A stretch of 64,000 nucleotides of DNA from Schmidtea polychroa (lineage: Eukaryota), in contig CM097888.1 in the NCBI GenBank assembly GCA_044892525.1, positions 91,016,001 through 91,080,000 on the forward strand, in the 5' to 3' direction. Of the stretch, positions 4,237 to 49,613 are shown one piece after another. Position 1 is the stretch's first letter. Every line of letters begins with the position of its first letter. The position numbers and the translations under genes are program-made. A model generated the notes under the pieces. It was not told the origin of the DNA and ran no database searches. It saw nothing but the letters and a program-made list of their open reading frames with translations.

Positions 4237-4672
4237 TATATTGATTTGTCTGAAATGTTCGACTTGTTGAATTTCCCCATCCGAAACCGTTCAATGATAT
4301 CACATTGATTGTGTAATTTGTATAAGGCAAAATCTTTCCATCATTGATTGTGACAGCAAATGATTGATTATTTGAACTAAATGTTGATCCAGTTATTGCA
4401 TAACATTGACCGGTATTATTGGGCCATGTTTGAATTGATATCTATATCAACATGCAAATCATCATTAATAGCAGCATTGGTCAAGCTCACATTATTTACA
4501 CAGCCAGTGCAATTCAATGACATTGTCAATACGCATGCACTATTCGTATTCTGCACCCAGATCAAATATTTCACGATTTCTCCATTCGCAACTTCAGGAG
4601 GTGACCAAGAGATAGAAAGTGGCGATAAAGGAAATGAACTCATTATATTTAAATTTCTCACAGAGCCACTGG
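4237..4672 (-). CDS. FN3 cassette 1 (two exons, 129 aa) of tandem-FN3 surface protein
   Basis: Exons 4672-4491 and 4441-4237, intron 4490-4442 (GTGAG..TAG, 49 nt). Spliced product TSGSVRNLNIMSSFPLSPLSISWSPPEVANGEIVKYLIWVQ...CTGCVNN|ISIQTWPNNTGQCY...LPYTNYTINVISLNGFGWGNSTSRTFQTNQY. Flanked by ttcag acceptor and gtaagt donor, phase 1/1. WSPP..NG.I..Y and LPYTNY.I.V are FN3 motifs. Confidence 0.85.
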
Positions 4673-4823
4673 CTGAATGATGAAAAAAGAAATTAGAAAT
4701 ATTTGAAATAGGAAAGCAGTAAAGAAATACTATCTAAATGAAAAACAACAAATGTCATAATATAAAAATGTTTGAAATAAGATTAAAGTCTCAAAGTTGT
4801 ATTATTTAGTCCATATTTCCTGT

Positions 4824-4963
4824 AAATATTACTAAAGCAAATTATAACATTAATTTGTTTGAGGAGTTTCTAAAAAATAATAATAATTGTATAAGTAAGG
4901 ATTTCAAAATACAATCAAACATGCACAACATCATACCATTATTTTAATACAAATTACAAAACG
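4824..4963 (-). mobile_element. Gypsy LTR relic inside cassette-1 upstream intron
   Basis: Matches the sequence directly following the polypurine tract of the gypsy fragment at 34704-34929. A second copy lies at ~11458-11598. Confidence 0.6.
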
Positions 4964-5012
4964 CTCAACGATGATAATAATAAAATAATGAAAATATATA
5001 ATATTAATACGA

Positions 5013-5013
5013 A

Positions 5014-5069
<56 letters not shown>

Positions 5070-5085
5070 TAATAATAATAATAAA
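5013..5085. repeat. (AAT)n microsatellite between FN3 cassettes
   Basis: Visible AAT run. The same position in most other cassettes is an N run flanked by AAT-rich sequence. Confidence 0.95.
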
Positions 5086-5256
5086 AATAGCTCTAATACA
5101 TTTTCTCAGTAAATCTGTTCTGACATAACTTTTAATATATTTCAAATTAAGCTACTTATCATTGTAAGTAATATAATTTCATTAAATGTTTATGAATTTT
5201 TAATCCTACGAAATTCTACCAAATGTGCAAATCAAAAATGAAAGAAATTCACTTAC

Positions 5257-5692
5257 TATATTGATTTGTCTGAAATGTTTGACTTGTTGAATTTCCCCAT
5301 CCGAAACCGTTCAATGATATCACATTGATTGTGTAATTTGTATATGGTAAAATCTTTGCATCATTGATTGTGACAGCAAATGATTGATTATTTGAACTAA
5401 ATGTTGATCCAGTTATTGCATAACATTGACCAGTATTATTGGGCCATGTTTGAATTGATATCTATATCAACATCCAAATCATCATTAATAGCAGCATTGG
5501 TCAAGCTCACATTATTTACACAGCCAGTGCAATTCAATGACATTGTCAATACGCATTCACTATTCGTATTCTGCACCCAGATCAAATATTTCACGATTTC
5601 TCCATTCGCAACTTCAGGAGGTGACCAAGTGATAGACAGTGGCGATGAAGGAAATGAACTCGTTACTTTTAAATTTCTCACAGAGCCACTGG
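5257..5692 (-). CDS. FN3 cassette 2 (two exons)
   Basis: Exons 5692-5511 and 5461-5257, 49-nt intron, open frame, intact splice sites. Confidence 0.85.
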
Positions 5693-6649
5693 CTGAATGA
5701 GGAAAAAACAATTAAGAAATATTTAACATTGGAAAGCGGTAAAGAAATACTATCTAAATAGGCAAAAAAAGAATTTCAATGAATAAAAATGTTTGTAAAT
5801 ATCATTAAAAAGTCTCAAAGATGAATTATTTGTTAATATTTCCCGTGATAATGAATTCTGCTTAACCCAGGAGGTTCTTCCTTATCCATGAGAGGAAATT
5901 TAACGTCATTATAAAATTAATAACTTTGGGAAATCATGCAAATCAATAACAAATTCGACAACTCTTTTTAGAATCTTGAAAGCGACTTTATTTCAAATTA
6001 CTTATCAAAATCTATTTCATAAGCTCAAATTGCTCAATGCATTTGTACTCCTAGGAATCTTATAATTGTATTTTATTTCTCGTTTTATCCTCCATAATGC
6101 AAATCAAATCTGGCGATTCATGGAAAACGTCCCTAACTTTCTCACAACAATTTTGAATATATCAAAAAATTTTACAACCTTAATTTTGAATGTTTTAATT
6201 GTATCTTGAAACTTTCTTTTTGTTACTTGAGGCATTTTGTTACAAAATAGATGTAAATGTAATTATCTCACTCATTCTATTCTGGATATATTATTCATTA
6301 TGAAGATTATTTAACAATTTATGTAAAGAAATTTCTCAACAGTTTACATAGCTTCATCAAAAATTAAATATTATAGTGATAAAATTAAATTATAAAAATA
6401 AATATTATTAACACGAAAAATAATGAATATTAAAAATAAAAATATCAATAAAAAATAAAAATATAATAAAATAAGNNNNNNNNNNNNNNNNNNNNNNNNN
6501 NNNNNNNNNNNNNNNNNNNNNNNNNNNNNNNNNNNNNNNNNNNNNNNNNNNNNNNNNNNNNNNNNNNNNNNNNNNNNNNNNNNNNNNNNNNNNNNNNNNN
6601 NNNNNNNNNNNNNNNNNNNNNNNNNNNNNNNNNNNNNNNNNNNNNTATA

Positions 6650-9545
6650 AAGCTTCTATAATTAGCTTCTAGAAGCCTAATAAAATATTTCAAATTATTT
6701 TAAATAAAGCCTCCAATAACTATTTATATACGCGTTTTAAATATTTCAATAAATGTGTCAATTTTGATTTTTAAATCCTATTTTTTAAAAATATATTTCC
6801 TAAAATTTTCTATATTATTTTAATTATTACTTTTTAATTTATTATATTTTTTATATATTGCCAGTTATTCTCAAGGTCAATGACAACAGATCAAATTCAT
6901 GATTTCATTGATTTCTTCTTTACTTTTATTTTTGGCCGTCGGTTTGTGATGAGATTGCTTCTTTGAATCTGACATTTTTCTTTTGGATGTTTCCATTAGC
7001 TATAATTTCGATTGAAATATTTTTTCTTTCCTCTGTTGGTTGACATTGTTGGAGATGTCTGTTTATCGAGGATGTTCCATCAGGATCTAGATGTTCTTTA
7101 ACTATTTGGTCCTGAGTGTATTTCCAATGTAGATTTCATTGCATGCATCGCACGTGATGCAATAGACGATGTTTTTTCTAAAGCACATATATTTCGGCGT
7201 CTGGCAGTTTTTCATTGTGCAATTGTTTTCTCTATTTGTGTTGTTTGCCAGAGCTTTTCTCAATGTCCAAGATTTATGTGCTATCCGAATTGGAAGACCG
7301 GTACGTTTAAGTTCTTTCAGGATCTTGAAGTCGAGTTTGTCACTGATGAATGGGATATTAGGATAGAAATATTTCTGATTCTTTTGTGTTAATTCCCTAG
7401 ATCTTTTTGTCTATACGAAGGTGAAAAAGGATTACTCTCACTAGGACCAAAGTTCAGTATAAACAAAGAAATAGAGGAAACAGAATTCCTCAATTTCAAA
7501 ACAGCTCTTTTCCGCATTGCGTACCAGATCAAATAGAACAATACAATACCTCATGAAAATGAGAATAGTATACATAAACACAGATAAACTCTTTCAACCA
7601 AATCCTGATACAGAATTAGATTCAACACTTTCAAAGGTCTGCCACAAAATCATGGAGATAGTGGAGAAGGAAAAAAGAAAACCATATTTCTGAAACCTAA
7701 CGAAAGATGAACAAGCATTATTAAAATCCCTTAAAAAGAAACCATACGTTTACTTAACAAGTGACAAGGGGGAGAATTTGCAATATAGAGAAAAATCGTT
7801 ATTGTGAAGCTGGTTACGAACACCTCGGTAACATCGAAACATACAAGAAAGTCAGCCGCGTGTCACCAAACACCATCGAAATGAAGATCAACAAAGTTTG
7901 GAAAGCCATAGCTTTGGAAATGAAGCGCCACAAAGAATAACCAACAGCTTCGTCACAAAAAATTCTGATCTTCCCAATTTATACCAACTAATTAAAACCC
8001 ACAAAGAAGGTCCTGCTATCAAAATTAGATCTATAGTGTCCAACACAAATGGACCAACAACTAAAACAAGTTGGCTCCTTGCAAAGATCTTGAAACCTTT
8101 ATTGGACACAATAACACACCATCTTCAAAGCAGCGACTGCCTCATGACAAGATTAAATAATAACATAACTTTTCATAGAGAATTCAAATACCGATTCAGA
8201 GGCTATTCAATGTTTAGAAAATAAATTAAGAGAAAGCAACTTGTTAATAAAGGAAATGAATATCGAGAATATCACCAAACTACTTACTGTTATCCTCGAG
8301 AACACCTATTTTACCTTTGAGCAAAATACCTATAAACAAGTTAAAGTTCTGCCTATGGGTTTAGCATATCAGGATTGCTAGCAATCATCCTATGGATAAC
8401 CTCGAACGACAGACACTGAGGACCATACAACCCGTCGTTTTCTATGCAAGATATGCAGATGATATCTTCATCACGACTAAAAGCAGAAAAGAAGCGAAGG
8501 AAATATTTCATACATTCAATGCGGCTCACCGAGATATTAAGTTCGAAATCGAATATCCGGAAGAAGATGGATCCCTCAATTTATTGGATTTGAGAATTAA
8601 AATAGAAGCAAATACTCCAACATACGGTTCTACAGAAAACCAACTCGCAAAGAAATATTTATGCACCAAATATCAGCTTCCATACTTACAGAAAGTACAT
8701 GTCATAAGAAACGAGAAGCAAAGGATAGCCAATCGATGCACTGAAAAAAACGAAAACTTTAAACAACAATCAAATTTCAATTAAAGCCTACACAGAATTC
8801 TACCCCAAAAAGATAAAGGGAATTAACACAAAAGAAGAAGAAATATTTCTATCTAAATCAGTGACATACTCGACTTCAAGATCCTGAAAGAACTTAAACG
8901 CACCGGTCTTCCAATTCGGATAGCACATAAATCTTGGACATTGAGAAAAGCTCTGGCAAACAACACAAATAGAGAAAACAATTGCACAATGAAAAACTGC
9001 CAGACACCGAAAGATATGTGCTTTAGAAAAAACATCGTCTTTTGCATCACGTGCAATGTATGCAATGAAATCTACATTGGAAATACACTCAGAACCAAAG
9101 AGTTAAAGAACATCTAGATCCTGATGGAACATCCTCGATAAACAGACATCTCCAACAATGTCAACCAACAGGGGAAAGAAAAAATATTTCAATAGAAATC
9201 ATAGCTAATGGAAACATCCAAAAGAAAAATGTCAGATTCAAAGAAGCAATTCTCATCATAAACAGACAGCCAAAAATCAACACTAAAGAAGAAATCAATG
9301 AAATCATGAATTTGATCTGTTGTCATTGACCTTGAGAATAACTGGCAATATATAAAAAATATAATAAATTAAAAAGTAGTAATTAAAATAATATAGAAAA
9401 TTTTAGGAAATATACTTTCAAAAGATAGGATTTAACAATCAAAATTGACACATTTATTGAAATATTTAAAATGCGTATGTAAGTGGTTATTAAAGGCTTT
9501 ATTTAAAATATTTTGAAATATTTTATTAGGCTTCCAGAAAAAAGC
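6650..9545 (+). mobile_element. Penelope-like retroelement (degenerate RT + GIY-YIG) with an inverted copy of its 3' end at the 5' side
   Basis: Plus strand: LGPKFS, KTSWLLAKILKPLL, YKQVKVLPMG, YARYADDIF, LNLLDLRI, then IVFCITCNVCNEIYIG. Segment 6650-7404 is the reverse complement of ~8815-9545. Confidence 0.88.
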
Positions 9546-10079
9546 TTTAAAAAATTTAAAAAAAAATTAGTTTGTGTCATTTTGAATTTTAAATGGTATT
9601 TATTTTATTTTATTTTTAATTTGAATTTTCAATAAAATTTTAAAAATTTTTAATAAAATAAAATCCATAAAGGAAGTATCTATTATATTGATAACCAATG
9701 AGAATTAAGAGAAAGGAAATAAAAGAAAGATAGAAATTTATTTTCAGGAGGGAGATTGCTAAATTCCAGGAGATTGACATGGAATATCTTATAGTCGAAA
9801 ATATTTTCATTAAATACATTATTTGCAGCAAAAGGCTTAAATTATCACTTTATTGTTTTATATAATAAATGCTGCTACCAAGNNNNNNNNNNNNNNNNNN
9901 NNNNNNNNNNNNNNNNNNNNNNNNNNNNNNNNNNNNNNNNNNNNNNNNNNNNNNNNNNNNNNNNNNNNNNNNNNNNNNNNNNNNNNNNNNNNNNNNNNNN
10001 NNNNNNNNNNNNNNNNNNNNNNNNNNNNNNNNNNNNNNNNNNNNNNNNNNNNNNNNCGTACGTTGGATGTTAATATTGG

Positions 10080-10703: not shown

Positions 10704-10868
10704 TCTAATACATTTTCTCAGTAAATCTGTTCTGACATAACTTTTAATATATTTCAAATTAAGCTACTTATCATTGTAAGTAATATAATTTCATTAAATG
10801 TTTATGAATTTTTAATCCTACGAAATTCTACCAAATGTGCAAATCAAAAATGAAAGAAATTCACTTAC

Positions 10869-11307: not shown

Positions 11308-11817
11308 CTGAATGATGAAAAAAGAAATTAGAAATATTTGAAATAGGAAAGCGGTAAAGAAATACTATCTAAATGAAAAACAACAAATGTCATAATATAA
11401 AAATGTTTGAAATAAGATTAAAGTCTCAAAGTTGTATTATTTAGTCCATATTTCCTGTAAATATTACTAAAGCAAATTATAACAATAATTTGTTTGAGGA
11501 GTTCCTAAAAAATAATAATAATTGTATAAGTAAGGATTTCAAAATACAATCAAACATGCACAACATCATACCATTATTTTAAAACAAATTACAAAACGCT
11601 CAACGATGATAATAATAAAATAATGAAANNNNNNNNNNNNNNNNNNNNNNNNNNNNNNNNNNNNNNNNNNNNNNNNNNNNNNNNNNNNNNNNNNNNNNNN
11701 NNNNNNNNNNNNNNNNNNNNNNNNNNNNNNNNNNNNNNNNNNNNNNNNNNNNNNNNNNNNNNNNNNNNNNNNNNNNNNNNNNNNNNNNNNNNNNNNNNNN
11801 NNNNNNNNNNNNNNNNN

Positions 11818-16595: not shown

Positions 16596-19500
16596 ATAAT
16601 TTCCAACGAATTACTTACATAACCAGGACACTAGACCTTGATATCTATTGAATGATGCGGGAATGCTTGGATAACTAAATTAAGTAAGTATGTTTGTCTT
16701 CTGTGTCAACAGTATCACTTAAACTAATAATTCTCCCTTTTGTAGATTACGCAATTCAATGTACTATAAATAGTATAACGATTGTGTGTTCCGTTTAGAT
16801 TTTTGAAGTGAATAAAGATTTCTGTGAAACTATGTCTTCTTCTAACATGGCGACCACGCCAGGACTCCAGAACTATATCAAGCCACCTAATCAATTGCTG
16901 CCAAATGGTGATTTAGAAATTTTTATTTTGGAATTGAAGAGATTTTTCGAAGTCACTCAACAACCGCAAGAAACTCAAGAAATAGTTACCAAGGCCTTTC
17001 TGTCGGTAGAGTTGATCCAGAAATATGAAGAAGTACAGAGCGATTATTCAGGCTATGAAGAAAGATTAAGAAAAGCGTTCGAGCCAAGGAAAAATCTAGC
17101 CATGGATCTAGACGCAGCTTTAAGATATCGAAAAGGAAATGACTCGTGCACCGAATTTTTCAATAAAGTGGAAAAGCTCGTCGACAATGTTCTTCGACAC
17201 AAATTAACAAAACCGGCATTAATGTTATTTTTAATGCAGAATGCAATGGAAGATATGGAAACAAAAAGAACTGAAATTAAGAGAAGTTAAATCAGTAGAT
17301 AAGGCCAAGGAAGTGATATCAAGAATGGAAGAAATTCAAAAAGAGCTTTCAAGTGAACAATCATTAGCATCTCTACATGAAAATAAATCATATGCGGAGA
17401 CAGTCAAAAGTCCGAGAAAAACTCAGTTGTAGCAACAGAATAAGACGCCAATATTTTCTAACTCTAGAACCAATGAGGCCATGAACTTCAATAGGCCAAA
17501 TAAAAGTGACTGGAAGAACGGGAGCAGGCGATTTAAACTGCAGAGATGTTGGGCGTGTGGAGAGCAAGGACATATTCGAGCAGAATGCCCAAACGTAAAA
17601 TGCTCTCAATGTTCCAAAAATGGTCATTTCAAGTATCAATGTTGGGACATCAGAAGAAATTCAGTTAAAACAGAAGCATATTACAACGGAAGAAATTATG
17701 ATAGAAATCAAAAACAATTTGGATCCAGAGGACAATATCAAAGCAGAAACCAATCTTCAGACAGAGGACCACATCGAAGGCAATGCAATGCGATATACGA
17801 CTACGAATACGAGGAAGGAGAGCTGATTCAACAGGATGACAAGCAAAAAGATTCCGAACAGCTAAAAGGGGAGGCTCCAGTTTCAAGGGAGTTGCTAGGA
17901 GCCATAAATTTGGTTTAAGTAAGTATATTGTTGACACAGAATGTTTGAATTTGAATGCTTGTGATTTCAAGATTTCCGTAATGAATGAATTTAAAGATGA
18001 TTTAAAAATTAATGATGTAATTATGAATGATTGTGAATGTTTTGACTTTGAAAATTATTTTGAATATAGTTTTTATGAAATTAGTAACAAAATTGATAAG
18101 ATTATGAGTATCGATATAATTAATAATAAAGTTAATGAAAATAAAGAAAGACCTTTTGCACCTAAATTCGTTTACGAAAGAATGAATGGCAGACCTAGTG
18201 TAGGTATTTGGCTGGAAAATAAAATAAAAGTTAATTGTCTTTTGGATACCGGGGCTAGAATAAACGTGATTAGCGAAGATGTTGTTAGTAAATTAAAGAT
18301 GCGTGATAAAATAAGGGAATCCAATATTATGGTTACATGTACAAACGAGAGCACACTTAAAATCATAGGAACAATATTACTAAAAGTGAGAATTTCGGGA
18401 TTAGAATTGGTAATAAGATTCTTTGTGGCAAATAAGATTAATCCGAGCGTAATTGCAGGCGTAGAAATGATGAATTGTTTTGATATTAAATTACAGACAG
18501 TAACTAAAGTAAAATTAAAAAATTAATTAATGAATTTAGAGGAAAACAATTTGAAAGGAATTATCGACCCAACGATTAATAAATTACTTAAAGAATTTTC
18601 GGATATATTCATTAAATATAAATGGGATGTAGGAAAAACACAGTTAATTAAACATAAGATAGTTACTAGAGATAGCCCAGTGACAATTAATCCTAGACGT
18701 CAGCCGATTCATATTGCTCACAAAATACAAGACATGCTAAAAGACATGGAAGAAGCAGGAATTATAAAAAAATGTGACTCGGTGTGGAATAGCCCATTGG
18801 TATGTGTGTTAAAAAAGAATAAATCAGATATGGATTTTCGGGCACTAAATGCAATTACGGAGAGACCTTGATTTCCAATACCAAATATTGAAGAGATGAT
18901 GGATATCCTAAATGGAGCACAGATATTTAGCACTATCGATCTTGGTAATGCTTATTATCAAGTGGAATTAGAAGAGGAATCAAAAATAAAGACTGCATTT
19001 TCAACAAAAGATGGTCAATATTGTTTTAACCGAATGCCTTTTGAAAATGCAGCTGCCCCAGCAACTTTTCAAAAATTAATGACTCAAGTTTTGGGTGATC
19101 TGAATTGGAGAGAAGCAATTGTCTATTTAGACGATATCCTTATATTTGCAGACAATGAAATCGAACATAAAAAAAGACTAGAAAGAGTTTTTCGAAAGAT
19201 TCAAGAAGCTGGTTTGAAAATAAGCTTAGAAAAATGTTGTTTTAACAAACTAGAAATAAAATTTTTGGGACACATTATAAATAAAAATGGTATTAAGACA
19301 GATTATGAAAAGATAAAAGCAATGCAAGAATATGAAAAACCAAAATGTATTAAACGTTTAAGAAGCTTTCTAGGCTTAACAAATTATTATCGAAAATTTG
19401 TTAAAGATTACGCCAAGTATGCAAGACCATTAGAAAGGTTATGTGGGTCTAACAAAGATAAACTTATATGGACTGAAGAATGTGAAACAAATTTCAACAC

Positions 19501-21273
19501 GCTAAAGAAAGCGTTAACGTCTACCCTAGTACTAGGATTTCCGGATTTACGAAAAACCTTTATTTTAGATACAGATGCTAGTTTCGATACGATTGGGGGA
19601 GTGCTTTCGCAGTTGAGTAGTAATGGACAAGAACAAGTTATTGCATATGGATCAAAGACAATGAATAAGCACGAAATCGGTTACTGCATTACGCGAAAGG
19701 AATTGCTTGCAATCTATCATTTTACTCAGCATTTCAAACACTATCTATATGGAAAAAGATTTACTTTAAGAACCGATCATAAAGCTATAACCTTTATGAT
19801 AAATACAAAAAAGCCAATCACAGCACAATTCCAAACATGGATTAACTATTTAAGTGGACTAGATATCAAATTAGAATACAGAAAAGGAGAATTGCATGCT
19901 AACGCAGATGCCCTATCAAGAAAAGACTGTACTTCATGTGGTCAGTGCCAAACAGTTCATGAAAACGCCAAGGTAGATAAAAATAAAACTAAATATTGGC
20001 CATAGAAAATATGGACCAAGAAATAAAAGTAAATAATGAAGGTATAATTTTTAATATACATAAAGACTTATGTCACGCAGGGGTAAACAAAATTTACGAA
20101 TATGAACGGAAAAATATGAGAATGAAAATTAGTGAAAACGAAGTTAGAAGAGTGATTGAAAATTGTGAACAGTGTCAGAAACGGAAGACGTGGACAAGAC
20201 GAACAAAAGAACCGCTGATTAAACAGAGTACAGATGAAGTTTTCAAAGAGATATTTATTGATTTCAGCGGACCATTTAAGAAAACAATTCATGGAAAACA
20301 ATATATTTTAGCTATAATTGATCAATTTAGTAGGTATATATCATTGACGGCAGTTGCTCATCAGGATGAAAAGACGACGGCAAAGATTTTAAGAGAAAAT
20401 TGGATTTTGAAATTTGGTGCCCCTAAAAGCATTCATTCCGATAGAGGAAAAACATTTGAATCTCAACTCCTTTTAGAAGTGTTGAAAACTCATCATATTA
20501 CAATAATATATTCAAGCCCATATCATCATAGTACAAACAGTTTAGTTGAGAGGCAATTTAGAACTATAAGGGATGCAATTGCAATTAAGTTAAAAGACAA
20601 ACGGCATAAAGATTGGGCAGAAATATTGCCAGATGTGGAATTTATGTTAAATGCGACGATACAGCAGACAACCGGATTTTTACCCTCTGAAATAATATTT
20701 GGGCGGAATATTTGTAGACAATGGATGGAAAAAGAGAATTTGGATATACAAAATAATGATGCTAATAATCGGAGAAGGGAGATCGTGGAGGGAATTAAAC
20801 ATAAACAAAACATAGAAAAGAAGTTAATTACACAAAATTATAGGAATTTTGAAGTTGGAGACCAAGTATTGGTTAAAAAAGAAAATACTAGAAAGATGGA
20901 TGAACGTTATGAAGGGCCTTATGAAATAACTGGAAAACGACATGACAGAAGCTATGTTCTAAAGAATAAGCAAGGCAAAGAAATAATCCGAAATGTAGAA
21001 TGGATCAAAAGTTTTAAATGGAGGGGGATGTAAGATGATATAATAATTTCCAACGAATTACTTACATAACCAGGACACTAGACCTTGATATCTATTGAAT
21101 GATGCGGGAATGCTTGGATAACTAAATTAAGTAAGTATGTTTGTCTTCTGTGTCAACAGTATCACTTAAACTAATAATTCTCTCTTTTGTAGATTACGCA
21201 ATTCAATGTACTATAAATAGTATAACGATTGTGTGCTCCGCTTAGATTTTTGTAGTGAATAAAGATTTCTGTA
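16596..21273 (+). mobile_element. Full-length but defective Ty3/gypsy LTR retrotransposon
   Basis: 5' LTR ends ...TCTAACA at 16847. 3' LTR starts TGTAAG at 21029 after PPT GGAGGGGGA. The visible LTR parts differ at only a few sites, and the outer ends are in N gaps. Gag has two CCHC knuckles (CWACGEQGHIRAEC, CSQCSKNGHFKYQC). Pol has LLDTGA, YLDD, RNase H and integrase, broken by stops and frameshifts. Confidence 0.96.
16848..16867 (+). promoter_or_regulatory. Primer binding site, tRNA-Arg-like
   Basis: TGGCGACCACGCCAGGACTC directly after the LTR terminal CA. Complementary to a tRNA 3' end (...GAGTCCTGGCGTGGTCGCCA) resembling tRNA-Arg. The isotype is inferred from memory of tRNA sequences. 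Confidence 0.7.
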
Positions 21274-21654
21274 NNNNNNNNNNNNNNNNNNNNNNNNNNN
21301 NNNNNNNNNNNNNNNNNNNNNNNNNNNNNNNNNNNNNNNNNNNNNNNNNNNNNNNNNNNNNNNNNNNNNNNNNNNNNNNNNNNNNNNNNNNNNNNNNNNN
21401 NNNNNNNNNNNNNNNNNNNNNNNNNNNNNNNNNNNNNNNNNNNNNNNNNNNNNNNNNNNNNNNNNNNNNNNNNNNNNNNNNNNNNNNNNNNNNNNNNNNN
21501 NTCTCAGTAAATCTGTTCTGACATAACTTTTAATATATTTCAAATTAAGCTGCTTATCATTGTAAGTAATATAATTTCATTAAATGTTTATGAATTTTTA
21601 ATCCTACGAAATTCTACCAAATGTGCAAATCAAAAATAAAAGAAATTCACTTAC

Positions 21655-22090: not shown

Positions 22091-23315
22091 CTGAATGATA
22101 AAAAAAAGAAATTAGAAATATTTGACATTGGAAAGCGGTAAAGAAATACTATCTAAATGAAAAACAACAAATTTCATAATATAAAAATGTTTGGAATAAG
22201 ATTAAAGTATCAAAGTTGTATTATTTTTTTCGCATTTCTGTGATAATGTATTCTGCTTAACCCAGGATTTTCCTCCTCAACCACGAAGGGAAATTTTAGG
22301 TCATTATAAAATTAGTAACTTTGGGAAATCATGCATATCAATAACAAATTCGACAACTCTTTCTAGAATCTTGAAAGCGACTTTATTTCAAATTACTTAT
22401 CAAAATCTATTTCATAAGCTCAAATTGCTCAATGCATTTGTACTCCTAGGAATCTTATAATTGTATTTTATTTCTCTCTTTAACCCCCAAAATGCAAATT
22501 AAATCTGGCGATTGATAGAAAACGTCCCTAACTTTCTAACAACAATTTGGAATATATCAAAAACATTGCGCTGTTTATTTTAAAATGTAAGACATCCAAC
22601 AAAAAAAATTTCCAGCCTTAGATTTAAATGTTTCAATTGTAACTTGAAACTTTGTTGTTGTTACTTGAGGGATTTAATTAGAAAATAGATGTAAATGTAA
22701 TTATCTCACTCATTCTATTCTGGATTTATTGTTCTTTTTGGAGATTATTTAACCATTTAGGTAAAGAATTTTCTCAACAGTTTCCATAGCATAATTAAAA
22801 ATTAAATATTATAATGATAATAATAAAGTAATGAAAATATATAATATTAATACAAAAACAAATAAGAATAAAAATATTAATAACATTAAATAATAACAAA
22901 AAATTAGCTAATGTGTTNNNNNNNNNNNNNNNNNNNNNNNNNNNNNNNNNNNNNNNNNNNNNNNNNNNNNNNNNNNNNNNNNNNNNNNNNNNNNNNNNNN
23001 NNNNNNNNNNNNNNNNNNNNNNNNNNNNNNNNNNNNNNNNNNNNNNNNNNNNNNNNNNNNNNNNNNNNNNNNNNNNNNNNNNNNNNNNNNNNNNNNNNNN
23101 NNNNNNNNNNNNNNNNNNNNNNNNNNNNNNNNNNNNNNNNNNNNNNNNNNNNNNNNNNNNNNNNNNNNNNNNNNNNNNNNNNNNNNNNNNNNNNNNNNNN
23201 NNNNNNNNNNNNNNNNNNNNNNNNNNNNNNNNNNNNNNNNNNNNNNNNNNNNNNNNNNNNNNNNNNNNNNNNNNNNNNNNNNNNNNNNNNNNNNNNNNNN
23301 NNNNNNNNNNNNNNN

Positions 23316-27815: not shown

Positions 27816-28308
27816 NNNNNNNNNNNNNNNNNNNNNNNNNNNNNNNNNNNNNNNNNNNNNNNNNNNNNNNNNNNNNNNNNNNNNNNNNNNNNNNNNNNNN
27901 NNNNNNNNNNNNNNNNNNNNNNNNNNNNNNNNNNNNNNNNNNNNNNNNNNNNNNNNNNNNNNNNNNNNNNNNNNNNNNNNNNNNNNNNNNNNNNNNNNNN
28001 NNNNNNNNNNNNNNNNNNNNNNNNNNNNNNNNNNNNNNNNNNNNNNNNNNNNNNNNNNNNNNNNNNNNNNNNNNNNNNNNNNNNNNNNNNNNNNNNNNNN
28101 NNNNNNNNNNNNNNNNNNNNNNNNNNNNNNNNNNNNNNNNNNNNNNNNNNNNNNNNNTATCAGTAAATCTGTTCTGACATAACATTTGATAAATTTCAAA
28201 TTAAGCTACTTATCATTGTAAGTAATATAATTTCATTAAATGTTTGAATTTTTAATCCTACGAAATTCTACCAAATGTGCAAATCAAAAATAAAAGAAAT
28301 TCACTTAC

Positions 28309-28747: not shown

Positions 28748-29710
28748 CTGAATGAGGAAAAAACAATTAAGAAATATTTGATATTGGAAAGTAGTAAAGA
28801 AACACTATCTAAATAGACAAAAAAAACAATTTCAATGAATAAAAATGTTTGTAAATATCATTAAAAAGTCTCAAAGATGAATTATTTGTTAATATTTCCC
28901 GTGATAATGAATTCTGCTTAACCCAGGAGGTTCCTCCTCATCCATGAGGGGAAATTTTACGTCATTATAAAATTTAACTTAGGGAAATCATGCAAATAAA
29001 TAACAAATTCGACAACTCTTTCTAGAATCTTGAAAGCTTCTTTATTTCAAATTATTTATCAAAATCTATTTCATAAGCTCAAATTGCTCAATGCATTTGT
29101 ACTCCTAGGAATCTTATAATTGTATTTTATTTCTCGTTTTATCCTCCATAATGTAAATCAAATCTAGCGATTCATGGAAAACGTACCTAACTTTCTCTTA
29201 ACAATTTTGAATATATCAAAAAATTTTACAACCTTAATTTTGAATGTTTATTGTTTCTTGAAACTTTCTTTTTGTTATTTTTATGACAAAGTACATAAAA
29301 ATGTAATTATCTCACTCATCCTATTCTGGATATATGATTCATTTTGGATATTATTTAACAATTTAGGTAAAGAAATTTCTAAACAGTCCCCATAGGATAA
29401 TCAAAAAATTAAATATTATAGTTATAAAATTAATTTATAAAAATAAATATTATTAATACGAAAAATAATGAATATTAAAAATAAAAATATCAATAAAAAA
29501 AATATATTTAAAAAAATCAANNNNNNNNNNNNNNNNNNNNNNNNNNNNNNNNNNNNNNNNNNNNNNNNNNNNNNNNNNNNNNNNNNNNNNNNNNNNNNNN
29601 NNNNNNNNNNNNNNNNNNNNNNNNNNNNNNNNNNNNNNNNNNNNNNNNNNNNNNNNNNNNNNNNNNNNNNNNNNNNNNNNNNNNNNNNNNNNNNNNNNNN
29701 NNNNNNNNNN

Positions 29711-30690
29711 TTCTACAGAAAACCAGCTCGCAAAGAAATATTTATGCACCAAAGATCAGCGCTTCCATACTTACAGAAAGTACATGTCATAAGAAACGAG
29801 AAACGAAGAATAGCCAATCGATGCACGGAAGAAAACGAAAACTTTAAAGAGCAATCAAATTTCAATAAAATCCTACACCGAAACGGATACCAAGGTGAGG
29901 ACATTGAAAAAATGAATTCTACCCCAAGAAGATCTAGGGAATTAACACAAAAGAATCAGAAATATTTCTATCTGAATATCCCATTCATCAGTGACATACT
30001 CGACTTCAAGATCCTGAAAGAACTTAAACGTACCGGTCTTCCAATTCGGATAGCACATAAATCTTGGACATTGAGAAGGGCTCTGGCAGGCAACATAAAT
30101 AGAGAAAACAATTGCACAATGAAAAACTGCCAGACACCGAAAGATATGTGCTTTAGAAAAAACATCGTCTATTGCATCACGTGCAATGTATGCAATGAAA
30201 TCTACATTGGAAGTACCCTCAGGACATTGCACCAAAGAGTTAAAGAACATCTAGATCCTGGTGGAACATCCTCGTTGGGCAGATATCTCCGGCAGTGTCA
30301 GCCAACAGAGGAAAGAAAAAATATTTCAATAGAAATCATAGCTAATGGAAACATCCAAAAGAAAAATGTCAGATTCAAAGAAGCAATCTCATCACAAACA
30401 GACGGCCAAAAATCAACACTAAAGAAGAAATCAATGAAATCATGAATTTGATCTGTTGTCATTGACTTTGAGAATAACTGACAATATATAAAGAAATTAA
30501 AAAAAATAGAATAAATTAAAAAGTAATAATTAGAATAATATAGAAAAAAAATTTTAAAAAATAGGGTTTGAAAATCAAAATTGACACATTTATTGAAATA
30601 TTTAAATAGCATATATAAGTAGTTATTGGAGGCTTTATTTAAAATATTTTCAAATATTTTATTAGGCTTCTAGAAGCTAATTATAGAAGC
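29711..30690 (+). mobile_element. Penelope-like element 3' part with open GIY-YIG endonuclease frame
   Basis: ORF to 30445: FYRKP...YFYLNIPFIS...NIVYCITCNVCNEIYIGSTLRTLHQRVKEH...KEAI. Same family as 6650-9545. The 5' part is hidden in an N gap. Confidence 0.9.
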
Positions 30691-31254
30691 TGTAAAAAAT
30701 TTAAAAATTTTTAGTTTGTGTCATTTTGAAATTTAAATGTAAAAATTATAAAAAATTTTAAAAGTTTTTAGTAAAACAATTCATTATATTTACAACCAAT
30801 GAGAATTAAGAGAAAGGAAATAAAAGAAAGATTGAAGGGTATTTTGAGGAAGAACATTGCTAAATTCCAGGAGATTGACAAGGACTATCGTATAGTCGAA
30901 AATTCTTTCATTAAATACATTATTTGCAGCAAAAGGCTTANNNNNNNNNNNNNNNNNNNNNNNNNNNNNNNNNNNNNNNNNNNNNNNNNNNNNNNNNNNN
31001 NNNNNNNNNNNNNNNNNNNNNNNNNNNNNNNNNNNNNNNNNNNNNNNNNNNNNNNNNNNNNNNNNNNNNNNNNNNNNNNNNNNNNNNNNNNNNNNNNNNN
31101 NNNNNNNNNNNNNNNAGTAAATTTGTTCTGACATAATTTTTGATAAATATCAGATTAAGCTACTTATCATTGTAAGTAATATAGTTTCATTAAATGTTTA
31201 TGAATTTTTATTAATTTTCTGTGACTCTACGAAATGTAAAAAAACTAAAAAATT

Positions 31255-32568: not shown

Positions 32569-33236
32569 ATGGAAAATGGTATGGATTTTGAAAATGCTAA
32601 TGATAATGAAATGGAAATGTAATTGAAGCATGTGAAACAGATCTTGATGAGGGTGAATTTGAAGAAATTATTCCATTAAAAGATGATGCAAAATTTGTTT
32701 TGAGTGGTCATTTGAATGTTGTTTGGTCAGTAGTTTGTGACAATAAATCGAGAGTTGCATTCACTGGTGGAATGGATGATACTATAATTGCATGGAGTTT
32801 AGAAGATGGCAAACAGATTAATATATTATATGGACATTCAGAATTAATAACGAAATTAAGCATCAACGAAGCTAACTCATTCCTTGTAAGGGTGGATTTA
32901 TGTAATTATGTAATCGTATGGAAATAAAATCTTGATCAAACGAAGTTTAATAAATTCAAATCAGTAGAAGTTTCAGATATTATTGACTATAAGTGGATAG
33001 TTTATCCATTATCCAAAGATGAATTTCTATATGTTCAACCAATAAAACTGGAACAGACGCATGGAAATTTGGACACGAATCTATATAAATTGGACTTTAT
33101 GCTTGTCGTTATTCCCGAAGATGATTTATTACAATTTGAGGAATCAAGTCTAAGACTTTTAGTTAGTGCTTTGAAAGAATATAATGCAAAATTCCAGATC
33201 AAGTATATCAGAACAAATGTTCTTTTCGAAAAATAA
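32569..33236 (+). pseudogene. Intronless WD40 gene fragment, AAMP/SQT1-like N-terminus
   Basis: Acidic N-terminus, then DDAKFVLSGHLNVVWSVVCD...AFTGGMDDTIIAWSLEDGKQINILYGHSELI...VIVWK*...VEVSDIIDYKW, colinear with the first WD repeats of AAMP as I recall them. One frameshift near the start and one in-frame stop. Confidence 0.65.
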
Positions 33237-33582
33237 ACAATAAAAACAAAAATAATGTTAATAATAATANNNNNNNNNNNNNNNNNNNNNNNNNNNNNNN
33301 NNNNNNNNNNNNNNNNNNNNNNNNNNNNNNNNNNNNNNNNNNNNNNNNNNNNNNNNNNNNNNNNNNNNNNNNNNNNNNNNNNNNNNNNNNNNNNNNNNNN
33401 NNNNNNNNNNNNNNNNNNNNNNNNNNNNNTCTCAGTAAATCTGTTCTGACATAACTTTTGATAAATTTCAAATTAAGCTACTTATCATTGTAAGTAATAT
33501 AATTTCATTAAATGTTTATGAATTTTTAATCCTACGAAATTCTACCAAATGTGCAAATCAAAAATAAAAGAAATTCACTTAC

Positions 33583-36630: not shown

Positions 36631-37104
36631 CTGGATATATTGTTCATTTTGGAAATAATTTAACAATTTAGATAACAAATTTTCTCAACAATTTCCAAAG
36701 CATAATCAAACATTAAATATTATAATGATAATTATAAAACAATGAAAAAATATAATATTATTATGAAAAATAATAATAAAAATATTAATAATAAATGATA
36801 ATAAAATTAANNNNNNNNNNNNNNNNNNNNNNNNNNNNNNNNNNNNNNNNNNNNNNNNNNNNNNNNNNNNNNNNNNNNNNNNNNNNNNNNNNNNNNNNNN
36901 NNNNNNNNNNNNNNNNNNNNNNNNNNNNNNNNNNNNNNNNNNNNNNNNNNNNNTCAGTAAATCTGTTCTGACATAACTTTTAATATATTTCAAATTAAGC
37001 TACTTATCATTGTAAGTAATATAATTTCATTAAATGTTTATGAATTTTTAATCCTACGAAATTCTACCAAATGTGCAAATCAAAAATAAAAGAAATTCAC
37101 TTAC

Positions 37105-41720: not shown

Positions 41721-42094
41721 GTGTAGGTTTAATTACTGTTGATATGTGCTGGTAAATTTTATATGTATGTTTTATATATGCTTCGTGAATTCTATTACTT
41801 TATATATCTTAATTTGAACAATCATGAGATATATAAGAGGATTTTTTGTAACATTGGCTCTTAGTGCTGTATTATCTTATAATGTTTCTTCCTAGTTTTG
41901 GATATCTTAAAAATTATTTTAATTTTCTTAGCTCAGCCCATGCATTTGTATAAGGTATTAATATATCGTATAAATGTGTACTACTAGATGCGATCAAGTG
42001 AAATATATGTGTAGCGCCAATTGCCTCCAAATATGTCCGCATAAAATCCTAGACAGAGAACTACAAGAAAGACTTATTCCAGGAATTGATAAAT

Positions 42095-44160: not shown

Positions 44161-45000
44161 TGGGCAATGTTCATAGGAAGGCCATTTGGTACCCAGGGCA
44201 AGCGCAAGGGCGCCATTCAAAATAAATGTGCTAAAGTCATGGGAAATTGTCTGATTATTGTTTGTTTGTTGTTTAAATGTTTCATATTTTTTCGCGCACA
44301 GTTTTAATATTTTACATTTCTGGAATGGTGAGTGCAATAAATTTTCTCGAATAGTTATGTGAATTTTGAGTGAATATCGATTTTTTAAATTTCCCAGTGA
44401 TCTAATCAATAGTTTTCAAAGGAAATTTGATTGCTTGGCACAGCGAATTAAATACTTTATATGGATATTTTTTTGAATTTATTGATTTTTAAACTTTTCA
44501 ATTTTTATAGTGAAATAATCAATATTTCATAAAATATTTGCAATTCATTGCAATAAGCACAGAAAATCAATATATGGTGAAAGTGAATTATCTATTCAAA
44601 TAAGGTTGACGAGATCAGAGGAGTAAAGGAAGTGCCAAGGAAGTGCTGTAATATATATATGGAAGATGCAATCGAATGTTTTGATGCGGTTTCATAAAGA
44701 ATGGATGGAGTTGAGAGCCTATCTGGAGGAATAGATCGAGATGTCTCTCTGTATAATTTGGATAAGAAGAACAAGGAGAACAGCAATAACGATTGAGAGA
44801 GACTATTGAAGCTGTGTAAATAGATGAAACAGAATGGAAAGTATATAATATCGATATCAATAGCAACAGCATTAGCAACAATACCAATAATAACCGTGAC
44901 TGATATAAGGTGAGTTTATATAGTAAATTAATCCGGTTAGCATATACAAATAGATAGATTAATATTGCTGATTCTATGGTGCGTTTCTATGGCGGCTGTT

Positions 45001-47307
45001 GGATCCAATTGGATGCTAGTGGATACTATTAGGTGTCATGGGTGCTATTGAATGCAATTGGGTCCTATTGGGTACTATTAGATTCTATTAGGTGCTATTG
45101 AATGCCATTAGGTGCCATTGGGTGCTATTAGGTGCTATTCGGTCCTATTGAATGCAATTGGGTCCTATTGGGTGCTATTGGATGCCATTGGGTGCTATTA
45201 AATGCTATTGAATGCCATTAGGTGCTATTGAATGATATTAGGTGCTATTGAATGCTATTAGGTGCTATTGAGTGCTATTGGATGTTATTGAATGCTATTC
45301 GGTCCTATTGAATGCAGTTGGGTCCTATTGGGTGCTATTAGGTGCTATTGAATGCCATTAGGTGCTATTGAATGCTATTCGGTCCTATTGAATGCAATTG
45401 GATCCTATTGGGTGCTATTGGATGCCATTGGGTGCTATTGATTGCTATTGGGTCCTACTAATGCTATTGGGTCCTACTAGGTGCTATTCGGTCCTATTGA
45501 ATGCAATTGGGTCCTATTGGGTGCTATTGGACGCCATTGGGTGCTATTGAATGCTATTGGATGCTATTAGATGCTATTGGGTCTTATTTGGTACTATTGG
45601 GTCCTACTAGATGCCATTGGGTCTTATTAGAAGCTATTCGGTCCTACTAGGTCCTACTAGGTGTTATTGGGTCCTACTAGGTGCTATTGGGTCCTACTAG
45701 GTGCTATTGGATCCTACTAGGTGCTATTGGGTCCTACTAGATGCTATTGGGTCCTACTAGATGCTATTGGGTCCTACTAGGTGCTATTGGGTCCTACTAG
45801 ATGCTATTGGGTCCTACTAGGTGCTATTCGGTCCTATTGAATGCAATTGGGTCCTATTGGGTGCTATTGGACGCCATTGGGTGCTATTGAATGCTATTGG
45901 ATGCTATTGGATGCTATTAGATGCTATTGGGTCTTATTTGGTACTATTGGGTCCTACTAGATGCCATTGGGTCTTATTAGAAGCTATTCGGTCCTAATAG
46001 GTCCTACTAGGTGTTATTGGGTCCTACTAGGTGCTATTGGGTCCTACTAGGTGCTATTGGATCCTACTAGGTGCTATTGGGTCCTACTAGATGCTATTGG
46101 GTCCTACTAGATGCTATTGGGTCCTACTAGGTACTATTGGGTCCTACTAGGTGCTATTGGGTCCTACTAGATGCTATTGGGTCCTACTAGATGCTATTGG
46201 GTCCTGCTAGATACTATTGGGTCCTACTAGGTGCTATTGGGTCCTACTAGGTTCTATTGGGTCCTACTAGATGCTATTGGGTCCTACTAGGTGCTATTGG
46301 GTCCTACTAGGTGCTATTGGGTCCTACTAGGTGCTATTGGGTCCTACTAGGTGCTATTGGGTCCTACTAAGTGCTATTGGGTCCTACTAGGTGCTATTGG
46401 GTCCTACTAGGTGCTATTGGGTCCTACTAGATACTATTGGGTCCTACTAGGTGCTATTGGGTCCTACTAGGTGCTATTGGGTCCTACTAGGTGCTATTGG
46501 GTCCTACTAGGTGCTATTGGGTCCTACTAGGTGCTATTGGGTCCTACTAGGTGCTATTGGGTCCTACTAGGTGCTATTGGATCCTACTAGGTGTTATTGG
46601 GTCCTACTAGGTGCTATTGGGTCCTACTAGGTGCTATTGGATCCTACTAGGTGCTATTGGGTCCTACTAGATGCTATTGGGTCCTACTAGATGCTATTGG
46701 GTCCTAATAGGTGCTATTGGGTCCTACTAGGTGCTATTTGGTCCTACTAGGTGCTATTGGGTCCTACTAGGTGCTATTGGGTCCTACTAGGTACTATTGG
46801 GTCCTACTAGATGCTATTGGGTCCTACTAGGTGCTATTGGGTCCTAATAGGTGCTATTGGGTCCTACTAGGTGCTATTTGGTCCTACTAGGTGCTATTGG
46901 GTCCTACTAGGTGCTATTGGGTCCTACTAGGTACTATTGGGTCCTACTAGATGCTATTGGGTCCTACTAGGTGTTATTGGGTCCTACTAGGTGCTATTGG
47001 GTCCTACTAGGTGCTATTGGATCCTACTAGGTGCTATTGGGTCCTACTAGATGCTATTGGGTCCTACTAGATGCTATTGGGTCCTAATAGGTGCTATTGG
47101 GTCCTACTAGGTGCTATTTGGTCCTACTAGGTGCTATTGGGTCCTACTAGGTGCTATTGGGTCCTACTAGGTACTATTGGGTCCTACTAGATGCTATTGG
47201 GTCCTACTAGGTGCTATTGGGTCCTACTAGGTGCTATTGGGTCCTACTAGGTGCTATTGGGTCCTACTAGGTGCTATTGGGTCCTACTAGGTGCTATTGG
47301 ATCTTAT
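45001..47307. repeat. ~2.3-kb satellite of 20-bp unit GGTCCTACTAGGTGCTATTG built from 10-bp subunits
   Basis: Directly visible. A 20-nt period puts stop codons in every frame on both strands, so it is non-coding. Confidence 0.98.
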
Positions 47308-47559
47308 TCAGCGCCGGCTTTACACAGTGCTGTAATAATGCCGCTCTAGGTGGGTATACAGCTTGGGTAATTTGTTACCAGGTGAGTGATCGCAGTGCTT
47401 GCATTAGACAATTTTGTGCCACATAAAAAGTGATATTAGTAACACGAAGGACAACAAATAATTTTCATAACATAAAAAATATTTTTAAATTTTAATTTTT
47501 CATAATTTTGCCGCCCCTTAAAATAATTAAAAATATTTAATCAATTATTAATTGCCAAT

Positions 47560-48780
47560 AATTTTTAAATTATTAATTTATTTTTTTCTTTAATTATTCT
47601 TTAATTATTAATTGATTTGTAAATATTGATTGTCAATAATTATAATTAATAAAATAAATCAATATGAATATAATTAATTAAATAATTATTTAATTTATAT
47701 ATAAATAATTACATTTTTAATAATCATTAATTTTCTTTTTTCATTCAATTGTTTATTATAAATTTAACTTTAATTATTTTAATTAAGTCATTTCATTAAT
47801 TAATTATAATTTTTTGATTATAAATTAACTAATTCATTTTATTTTTCTATTCAATTAATTTTAGTAATTTATATAATAATTAATAATTATATATTTGGTA
47901 ATTTTAAATTACTCATTTAATTAATAATCATTTATTTCTTTAATTATTAATTAATTTGTAATTATTAATTGTCAATAATTATAATTTATAAAATAAATAA
48001 TTATGAATATAATTAATTAAATAATTATTTATTTTATATAAAATTAATTACATTTTAGATAGTCAATAATTTTCATTTTTTTTATTTAATTATATTAATT
48101 TAATTAATTATTAAATTATTAATAAATTAGTAAATATTGATTATCAATAATTATAATTTATAAAATAAATAATTAGGTATATAATTAATTAAATAATTAT
48201 TTAATTTATTTATAATTAATTATAATTTTAATAATCAATAATTTTCATTTTTCATTTAATTGTTTATTATAAATTTTATTTAAATCATTTAATTAAATCA
48301 TTTCATTAATTAATTTATATAATAATTAATAATTATATATTTGGTAATTTTAAATAACTTATTTAATTAATCGTCATTTTTATTTGATTATTTTAATATA
48401 ATTAAATTAATTTATATTTATTAATTAATTATATTTTTCAAAATTTATAATTTAATAATTAATTATATCAATATTTATAAAAATAATTAATTATTTATAT
48501 TAATTAATAATTAATAAAATAAATAATTATGAATATAATTAATTAAATAATTATTTAATTTATAAATAATTAATTATATTTTTAATAATCAATAATTTTC
48601 ATTTTTCATTTAATAATTTAATTTAATTAATAATTATATATTTGGTAATTTTTAATTACTTATTTAATTACATTAATTAATCATTATTTTTATTCGATTA
48701 TTTTAATTATTTTTTATTAATTAATTAATTAATTAATTATATTTTAATTAATAATATTGCTAATAGTTATTAATGAATAA
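47560..48780. repeat. Extremely AT-rich degenerate tandem repeat
   Basis: Almost no G/C. Blocks such as GTCAATAATTATAATTTATAAAATAAATAATTATGAATATAATTAATTAAATAATTATT recur near 47630, 47970, 48140 and 48520. Confidence 0.8.
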
Positions 48781-48814
48781 TAATGAGGAGAGCAATCGGG
48801 ATAAAATCACTAAC

Positions 48815-49613
48815 TGAATTGATCAGTGACCACCGATATCGAGTGCGCTGCTCCCCATCCGAATTCATTGAGAGCAGTCACGGTCACTAGGTAATTGCTG
48901 GCCGGCTGGATATTGGAATCATTGATTGCCATTGATAAATGCGTGCTAGCAGCTGTCAGGAATGTAGTAGCATTATCAATCTGGCTGCAATTCCTCAGTG
49001 ATGGATCTAGCAAGCTCTGTGCAATCAGCTGAGCTGGCAACTCCTGGCAATCGCTACAACTGACCAGCCAGCGCTTCATGCATATCGAATCATTCAATTG
49101 TCCACCAATCGCCATTAAATACGCTAGAATCCCTCCTCCAATCACTGAAGGACGATCCCATTCAATCAGGAGATTATTCACTCCCCATTTGCTTGTTCCC
49201 TTCAGGTTTTGCACTGGTGAACTCTTGCTCAATGCTGCAATGTTGACAACATCTGTTACTATGGAACTAGCATTATTGATGGAGATTGCATACGTACTGC
49301 CGCTGGTGATGCAGCATATGTTAAATGTTGCATAGATTTGTCCATTAGTTATGTTACCATTGACATACTTTATAAGCCCACAACTGCTGTTCTGAGGCGG
49401 CACAGTTTCTGATAGCTAGAATCATCGGTTATTCCGTCAGTAATTTAATAAGTTTTACACTCTGATTATTGATAGATATTAAATTGCTGGTAAAGCAAGA
49501 TGCTTCAGAAACATTGATATAGAATACAGTTTGTGATTCTAGGACCGTTACATTAATTATAACTGATAGATATGTATTCTTTTGAGAAAAACTCGCAATC
49601 AATCCAAATGAAT
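48815..49613 (-). CDS. 5' exons of the tandem-FN3 surface-protein gene (possible Ig-like region + divergent FN3 domain)
   Basis: Exon 49613-49459 (phase-1 acceptor ttttag), 43-nt intron 49458-49416 (GTAAAAC..TAG), exon 49415-48815 ending TDQF-A|GTTAGT (phase 1). Encodes SPVQNLKG...IEWDRPSVIGGGILAY...CMKRWLVSCSDC...C...INDSNIQPASNYLVTVTALNEFGWG, colinear with the cassettes. Confidence 0.82.

Follow-up and report, generated by a model that had tools for sequence, protein, structure and literature searches.

What kind of gene accounts for the tandem exon cassettes on the minus strand of this stretch of Schmidtea polychroa DNA? The 64,000 nucleotides analysed here (GCA_044892525.1, contig CM097888.1, positions 91,016,001 to 91,080,000; hereafter the window) hold nine nearly identical copies of a two-exon module. 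Our analysis argues that these cassettes are constitutive-type exons of one minus-strand gene for a receptor-type protein tyrosine phosphatase (PTP) with an R3-like architecture, in which a fibronectin type III (FN3) module has been amplified in tandem and homogenised; we put the probability of this reading at about 0.75. In the mechanism that we propose, retroelements inserted into the introns between cassettes would have expanded the primary transcript to more than 65 kb, from which the cassettes would be spliced head to tail to encode a heavily glycosylated FN3 stalk with about 1,400 residues of repeats. This stalk would be followed by one further FN3 domain, a cysteine-rich juxtamembrane region, a single transmembrane helix and a single PTP domain, and unequal exchange together with gene conversion would keep the copies near-identical.

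Anatomy of the cassette array

One cassette was compared by BLAST with the whole window, and exon limits were then taken from anchored extraction and multiple alignment. The search returned nine minus-strand copies, 93.7-99.5% identical over 476-571 nt. Each is composed of an exon A of 182 nt, a 49-nt GT..AG intron in phase 0 and an exon B of 205 or 208 nt, which yields a spliced length of 387 or 390 nt with both outer borders in phase 1, that is, a module of phase pattern 1:0:1 and about 129 residues. No in-frame stop occurs in any of the nine, and acceptor and donor sites are conserved in all of them. In the order of transcription, the window cassettes are:

37543-37362 and 37312-37105, minus strand: cassette c9, exons A and B, 390 nt spliced
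34021-33840 and 33790-33583, minus strand: cassette c8, exons A and B, 390 nt spliced
28747-28566 and 28516-28309, minus strand: cassette c7, exons A and B, 390 nt spliced
23899-23718 and 23668-23464, minus strand: cassette c6, exons A and B, 387 nt spliced
22090-21909 and 21859-21655, minus strand: cassette c5, exons A and B, 387 nt spliced
12427-12246 and 12196-11989, minus strand: cassette c4, exons A and B, 390 nt spliced
11307-11126 and 11076-10869, minus strand: cassette c3, exons A and B, 390 nt spliced
5692-5511 and 5461-5257, minus strand: cassette c2, exons A and B, 387 nt spliced, on the same gap-free contig as c1
4672-4491 and 4441-4237, minus strand: cassette c1, exons A and B, 387 nt spliced, the lowest in the window, last base 4237

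An initial annotation, made from the letters of the window, had described nine open two-exon cassettes on this strand with intact splice sites and phase 1 at both ends, and BLAST and extraction bear it out. It had also stated that the track of open reading frames (ORFs) shows only antisense shadows here, and the plus-strand ORFs overlying the cassettes are indeed such shadows. Every window cassette encodes 6-8 N-glycosylation sequons as well as four cysteines, which lie in an insertion that separates the halves of the fold. The proteins encoded by c9 and c3 are identical, and the others differ at few positions. A whole-genome search and the sequence below nucleotide 1 added two further intact cassettes, c0 (window -4255..-4690) and c-1 (-6160..-6582), the latter with its internal intron shortened to 36 nt, so that the assembly holds 11 cassettes in total, nine of them within the window. 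The genome search also gave two partial matches at a distance of 1.5 Mb.

The cassettes encode FN3 domains

Against the fn3 profile of Pfam (PF00041), exon A of c9 matches positions 2-42 (23.7 bits) and exon B positions 34-81 (19.5 bits); each exon-half scores below the 25-bit cut-off, and the halves are collinear. The spliced four-cassette protein of a related species (P0001; UniParc UPI0005FF8A4E, 513 residues), which was found by an exhaustive search with exon B, reaches 124.9 bits with four fn3 domains. An AlphaFold2 model of one of its cassettes (P0001:131-259) is all-beta, with a predicted local distance difference test score of 70.9, and its low-confidence part, residues 58-65, is the cysteine-bearing insertion. 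All 16 of the 16 best Foldseek matches of this model in the PDB are FN3 domains, with target TM-scores of 0.21-0.78. Profile halves and the structure model of the relative's cassette thus agree that the modules are FN3 domains, as the initial annotation had it.

Splicing of the cassettes into mRNA

What substantiates the use of these exons is a set of assembled contigs from four sequencing runs that were guessed to be RNA (X7 from one study; X8, X9 and X12 from another). The contigs were placed on L014:2000-6000, which comprises c0, c-1 and the unique exons after them (L014:4360 corresponds to window -5640). The RNA-like assemblies total 14-69 million letters, compared with a genome of 781 Mb, and contain 53-64% of the sequence words of exon 2, the FN3 exon upstream of the array, and 7-12% of those of the stretch from c1 to c2. 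Bins that contain only intron (3876-4143, 5082-5215, 5752-5885) are at or near zero depth while the exons are covered, and all listed joints are GT..AG on the minus strand, which together indicates that the contigs derive from spliced RNA. The joints that involve cassettes are:

5514>5564: removal of the 49-nt intron of c0, one run (X8)
5736>5310, back 427: exon B to the exon A of the next cassette, four of four runs
3840>5310: c0 to c-1, two runs
3354>5310: cassette exon B to the unique FN3 exon after the array, four of four runs

Joint 5736>5310 carries nine letters that are the reverse complement of an exon A start of the c1-c9 type, showing that exon B is joined to a following exon A and that at least one window cassette is spliced behind another cassette. 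A 3-nt insertion at 5486 is present in part of the depth (127 of 350 in X9), and the 387-nt and 390-nt types are therefore both expressed. Further downstream, five small introns of 46-93 nt are removed in the RNA-like contigs, and a loose end at L014:2120 matches, in two halves, a 15-nt micro-exon and the next exon toward the PTP domain. An in-frame stop at L014:2669-2671 was considered as a break in the gene and rejected, as it lies inside a 42-nt intron (L014:2669-2710) that is removed in the RNA contigs.

Thus, one cassette is spliced to the next within an mRNA that extends in the direction of the PTP exons. The initial annotation had made its case dependent on removal of the 49-nt intron, which is seen in one run, and had left a choice between a lengthening ectodomain and a Dscam-like pool of alternative cassettes. 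It is the former that is favoured by contigs joining cassette to cassette and the array to unique downstream exons; direct cassette-cassette junctions in all four runs contradict the use of one cassette per mRNA.

The gene on either side of the array

Outside the cassettes, the gene model comprises the following elements upstream of the array and in the cytoplasmic juxtamembrane part:

49459..49659, minus strand: candidate exon 1, ATG at 49659, 67 codons, hydrophobic start resembling a signal peptide, GT donor at 49458
48815..49415, minus strand: exon 2, a divergent FN3 domain with no intron, preceded by 65 unassigned residues; phase-1 end, GTTAGT donor
L014:2120-2143, minus strand: micro-exon of 24 nt, AG/GT-bounded, in RNA contigs
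window -9644..-9658, minus strand: micro-exon of 15 nt, AG/GT-bounded, in RNA contigs

A 43-nt intron (49458-49416), read from the sequence, separates candidate exon 1 from exon 2; the start codon and signal peptide of exon 1 are putative. The FN3 module of exon 2 aligns with the cassette over its whole length (phmmer E 8e-14; Pfam fn3 20.1 bits), in agreement with the divergent, phase-1-ending FN3 exon that had been noticed upstream of the cassettes. Given this phase, a splice from exon 2 to c9, which is a step we infer, would create the same linker as that between cassettes. A profile built from all FN3 modules found no extra FN3 exon between exon 2 and c9. This 11-kb interval contains a satellite with 10-bp units, 2.3 kb long, at 44960-47300.

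At the other end of the array, the next FN3 exon pair (Pfam fn3 26.1 bits) follows directly after c-1, past a 63-nt intron, bringing the number of recognisable FN3 modules to 13 (exon 2, eleven cassettes and one after the array). It is succeeded by a cysteine-rich region, a hydrophobic transmembrane stretch, the 24-nt and 15-nt micro-exons and the PTP domain. As judged by inspection of the mRNA rebuilt from the RNA joints, the transmembrane stretch consists of about 23 hydrophobic residues followed by the basic sequence YKRLHR. About 17 kb below the window start, in 40 kb of fetched and gap-free sequence, four collinear minus-strand exons match positions 14-75, 69-122, 130-177 and 176-222 of the 234 positions of Pfam Y_phosphatase. 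Across the 104 kb examined, there is a single copy of each of the motifs DYINAS, DFWRM, KCSQYWP, VVHC and SAGVGRTG, and KNRY, QMVQTE and a WPD loop reading WLD are visible in ORF pieces below the window. The catalytic loop HC-SAGVGRTG is intact, with a single HC..SAGVGRTG in the 40 kb below the window.

These exons encode a PTP domain, and they fall past nucleotide 1, where the initial annotation, having likened the repeats to those of PTPRQ and usherin, had suggested looking for transmembrane, PTP or kinase exons; its guess of a PTPRQ-like protein was right in this respect. Its proposal of one large surface-protein gene is likewise upheld: FN3, transmembrane and PTP exons are collinear, and RNA contigs link the array to the downstream exons. 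As FN3 repeats, one transmembrane helix and one PTP domain are the defining architecture of the R3 subtype, we call the gene R3-like. Directly after the PTP exon that ends in QMVQTE there is an A/T-rich triplet repeat of about 2.4 kb (L015, window about -17300..-19760), and the last exon or exons of the gene must lie beyond it. Genes further down are of other kinds (ankyrin repeats, a kinase). Some 33 kb downstream, a minus-strand ORF piece at L017 (window -39764..-39997) bears a resemblance to the stalk exon and to the FN3 exon that follows the array, and may be another paralog or a fragment.

Evolution of the copies

How have the copies remained so similar? Among c1-c9, exon A has diverged most, by a pairwise mean of 5.7%; the corresponding means are 1.7% for the intron, 2.0% for exon B and 2.2% for the 95 nt that follow it. 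With the intron as conserved as exon B, the similarity reflects youth or homogenisation and not selection alone. This also qualifies what the initial annotation had implied when it set the open frames against the stop-filled transposons between the cassettes: the frames are intact, but they carry less weight when the 49-nt intron between them has diverged no further. Selection is nevertheless visible. Among 60 variant codons, 23 are synonymous and 37 nonsynonymous (pN/pS 0.44), against an expected synonymous share of 0.216 (p = 0.002), and none is a stop, which would be the outcome of 5.9% of random substitutions (probability about 0.03). Purifying selection on the cassettes is thus observable, though modest.

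Several features of the copies point to exchange among them. Few of about 535 sites distinguish cassettes c9, c8, c7 and c3, despite 3.5-26 kb and several retroelements between them, and c8 and c9 show one difference in about 535 aligned nucleotides. Both c4 and c6 have a distinct 5' haplotype of exon A, which c-1 shares in part, and an upstream-flank type of their own, and they have a 4.5-kb upstream block in common that is 95-98.5% identical. Cassette c5 is a mosaic of a c3-like body and an upstream flank like that of c2, c7 and c8.

A paralogous gene on the same contig extends this pattern beyond the array:

G000:C4, about 92,521,000-92,540,000 (L020-L024), plus strand, 1.5 Mb away: paralogous receptor phosphatase gene, modules at 21018-21441, 25820-26219 and 27374-27771 of the joined 50 kb

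It shares the type of two-exon FN3 module, followed by PTP exons with the same motifs, but has only three modules in the 50 kb examined, which are 36-72% identical in amino acid sequence to each other and to the window cassette over the aligned parts. A tract of about 160 nt, however, which begins 100 nt before the end of exon A, spans the intron and stops a few bases into exon B, is 100% identical between c9 and two of these modules, while its flanks are 50-60% identical. Such perfect identity including an intron, amid diverged flanks, is the signature of gene conversion. We also considered an RNA element embedded in the shared tract and rejected it, as the fold of 162 nt gives no signal (z = -0.37).

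The module itself is found more widely. The relative's protein P0001 has four tandem cassettes, the best stretch being 67% identical to the window exon B, with the same junction (..QY-T/I-SG..), the same position of the internal intron, and near-identical cassettes in an A-B-A-B pattern. It differs in being a partial gene model of unknown support which ends by reading through a donor (..QYSK), and in that surplus residues remain at the internal intron of one cassette and another is 14 residues short. Used as a query itself, P0001 returned only P0001. Three other candidates, P0002, P0003 and P0005, were rejected as relatives, having many short stretches and no whole-cassette match; P0005 is a Calx-beta protein. 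In two other organisms, genomic contigs contain this two-exon module with 43-53% identity and an intron at the matching position. Other assemblies of the array were sought through exact matches to the antisense 100-residue ORF, and there were none. Taken together, the array is a recent, lineage-specific tandem amplification of an FN3 exon pair that is still being homogenised.

Weighing the reading

A number of observations weigh against a single, constitutively spliced R3-like receptor gene. Protein word searches with exon 2 (200 residues) and with its last 65 residues matched nothing, and about 130 N-terminal and about 190 cysteine-rich juxtamembrane residues are without a Pfam match. In a PDB sequence search, none of the matches of one 97-residue PTP exon (E 4e-8 to 6e-4) was an R3 member; they were receptor phosphatases of the types S, F/LAR, C/CD45, alpha, zeta, epsilon and gamma. 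This one-exon search was not discriminating, and the assignment to the R3 subtype is based on architecture. The runs are only guessed to be RNA, and assembled contigs can neither count the cassettes per molecule nor exclude skipping. Contigs may be cross-placed among near-identical copies, so that the cassette-cassette joint is not assignable to particular ones. Exon B of c-1 is nearly without contig cover, and one joint bypasses c-1, which may reflect either skipping or a strain whose last cassette has an exon B of the c0 type. Finally, the copy number depends on short contigs scaffolded across gaps. The exact number of cassettes, as well as any functional effect of ectodomain length, is something that we infer.

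Could the number of modules itself vary? Exchange and conversion might alter the cassette count between individuals, and skipping might add isoforms, so that ectodomains of different length would occur. Hints in this direction are the c-1 bypass joint, the uncovered exon B of c-1 and RNA contigs that are 3-7% off the assembly. We regard such variation as unlikely but thinkable.

Among the rival readings, an improbable one is that the array is real and its size overstated by the assembly, near-identical contigs being alleles or one locus scaffolded repeatedly, with perhaps no more than six cassettes present. With 29% G+C, the window is AT-rich, and its sequence includes 13 runs of N. None of the 13 overlaps an exon, and hence no reading frame depends on a gap. 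Seven gaps, however, end 140-172 nt 3' of a cassette:

3534-4097, gap adjacent to a cassette
11629-11817, gap adjacent to a cassette
21274-21501, gap adjacent to a cassette
22918-23315, gap adjacent to a cassette
27816-28157, gap adjacent to a cassette
33270-33429, gap adjacent to a cassette
36811-36953, gap adjacent to a cassette

Self-alignments of the repeat unit begin at the edges of these seven gaps, which places the gaps at the same point of the unit. At the corresponding point, the gap-free c2 has a simple repeat of A/T-rich triplets, and the simplest reading is that gaps arise where the assembler failed to cross this repeat. The array in the window is scaffolded from eight contigs with one or two cassettes each, and across such joins the sequence alone cannot verify order, orientation, continuity or copy number.

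The best candidates for inflation are c7, c8 and c9, which are 98.7-99.2% identical across their units, along with the blocks c3-c4 and c5-c6. Of the nine cassettes in the window, seven begin at the edge of a gap. The contigs of c7 and c9 are 1.1-1.4 kb long and nearly all repeat unit, that of c7 (1.36 kb) being composed solely of it, with a gap on either side. The c4 and c6 blocks, 4.5 kb of high identity as described above, both end at gaps. DNA runs, moreover, contain 31-57% of the words of the c1-c2 stretch compared with 100% for exon 2. On the other hand, the copies differ structurally, with three kinds of upstream flank, distinct retroelement neighbours, two length types and mosaic variants; two gap-free stretches hold two cassettes each (c1-c2 and c0/c-1); and both length types are present in the RNA-like contigs. 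In each of the four runs, collapsed contigs of exon B are 5-7 times as deep as the unique exons downstream, but contig depth is unsuited to ranking parts of a gene, and we set it aside as a copy counter and keep it as a hint only. Our judgement is that the array is real and the number of cassettes approximate.

Much more remote is a pool of alternative cassettes, used one at a time or in variable subsets through regulated splicing to produce Dscam-like recognition isoforms. The symmetric phases would permit any subset, variation is greatest in exon A (5.7%, compared with 2.0% in exon B), and a joint that connects exon B of a cassette with the unique exon behind c-1, found beside the c0 to c-1 joint, could represent skipping of c-1. 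That bypass is explained equally well by a strain with an exon B of the c0 type in c-1, the exon B-exon A junctions in four of four runs are incompatible with mutually exclusive use, the near-likeness of the cassette proteins (c9 equals c3) would make the gain in diversity very small, and the conserved tract is without an RNA-structure signal.

Equally hard to sustain is the notion that only the cassettes near the unique exons enter mRNA and the rest are young, undecayed pseudo-exons in a retroelement-filled intron: while at 2-6% divergence chance alone would leave the frames intact, the intron is no less conserved than the exons, and the introns between cassettes are 3-10 kb long and filled with retroelements compared with 42-93 nt for the gene's other introns, the cassette-cassette junction bears an exon A start of the c1-c9 type and not of the c0/c-1 type, and the variant codons show a synonymous excess and no stop.

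Elements in and around the gene

The initial annotation had noted transposons between the cassettes, and Pfam does find RVT_1, RNase H, rve and GIY-YIG domains there. The elements delimited within the array and just upstream of the gene are:

16799..21030, plus strand: broken Ty3/Gypsy-type retroelement in the c4-c5 intron, with a gap on either side; Pfam protease, RVT_1, RNase H and rve on separate ORF pieces
29447..30739, plus strand: GIY-YIG endonuclease element fragment, read as Penelope-like, in the c7-c8 intron; related copies at 6651-9595
54853-59585, minus strand: intact-looking Ty3/Gypsy-type retroelement just upstream of the gene, with a 1021-residue pol ORF (protease, reverse transcriptase, RNase H, integrase) and a 387-residue gag ORF with zinc knuckles

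Other sequences in these introns look like pieces of genes. Two plus-strand open pieces at 32610-33233, in the c7-c8 intron, could be a gene fragment or a nested gene, the first of them looking like WD40 repeats. An uninterrupted plus-strand ORF of 654 residues in the c1-c0 intron, running from window 1-182 on to -1779, looks like a transposase of the hAT/ZBED type. In the c0/c-1 intron, a plus-strand fragment at L014:4360-4833 (window -5640..-5167) resembles a Rab-like GTPase; highly abundant RNA contigs align with it at about 90-93% before passing into unlike sequence, and it is probably a pseudogene or a retro-copied piece of a highly expressed gene elsewhere. Upstream of the gene, a plus-strand exon at 62200-62409 resembles ribosomal protein S26 and would belong to a neighbouring host gene.

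Significance and comparison with known systems

What can be learned from this locus? From a candidate start near 49659 to the PTP exons, it represents a large expressed receptor phosphatase gene that was missed by ORF-based tracks. It also illustrates clearly how a receptor ectodomain grows longer when an exon pair with symmetric phases is amplified in tandem, with conversion keeping the sequence alike even with respect to a paralog 1.5 Mb away. The size of the ectodomain is thought to affect where receptor phosphatases sit and what they reach. A changeable number of modules, if true, would offer a simple evolutionary way of tuning their placement and reach. For annotation, the locus is a warning, as gene models here are prone to collapsing or truncating the repeats.

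Tandem, similar exons of the same phase within one surface-receptor gene recall the Dscam clusters of mutually exclusive exons. In those clusters, members of an array are not joined to one another. Here, in contrast, they are spliced to each other, with exon B-exon A joints in four of four runs and the c0 to c-1 joint in two, and they encode almost the same protein.

The closer parallel is provided by the R3 receptor-type PTPs, among them PTPRB, PTPRJ, PTPRH, PTPRO and PTPRQ of vertebrates, the Drosophila proteins Ptp10D, Ptp4E and Ptp52F, and DEP-1 of C. elegans, which likewise combine an FN3 ectodomain with one transmembrane helix and one cytoplasmic PTP domain. The FN3 exons of this group have phase-1 borders (1:1), some with an extra phase-0 intron (1:0:1), as described for PTPRO (PMC5336234), and the 1:0:1 cassettes and the phase-1 end of exon 2 conform to this organisation. 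The gene presented here departs from these receptors in that 11 of its 13 FN3 modules are 90-99.8% identical at the DNA level and homogenised by conversion, in the cysteine-containing insertion of about 40 residues in each cassette, and in a WPD loop that reads WLD. The kind of receptor is thus already known, and the amplification of FN3 modules within it is a new instance, of moderate-to-low surprise, of how an R3-like ectodomain can grow.

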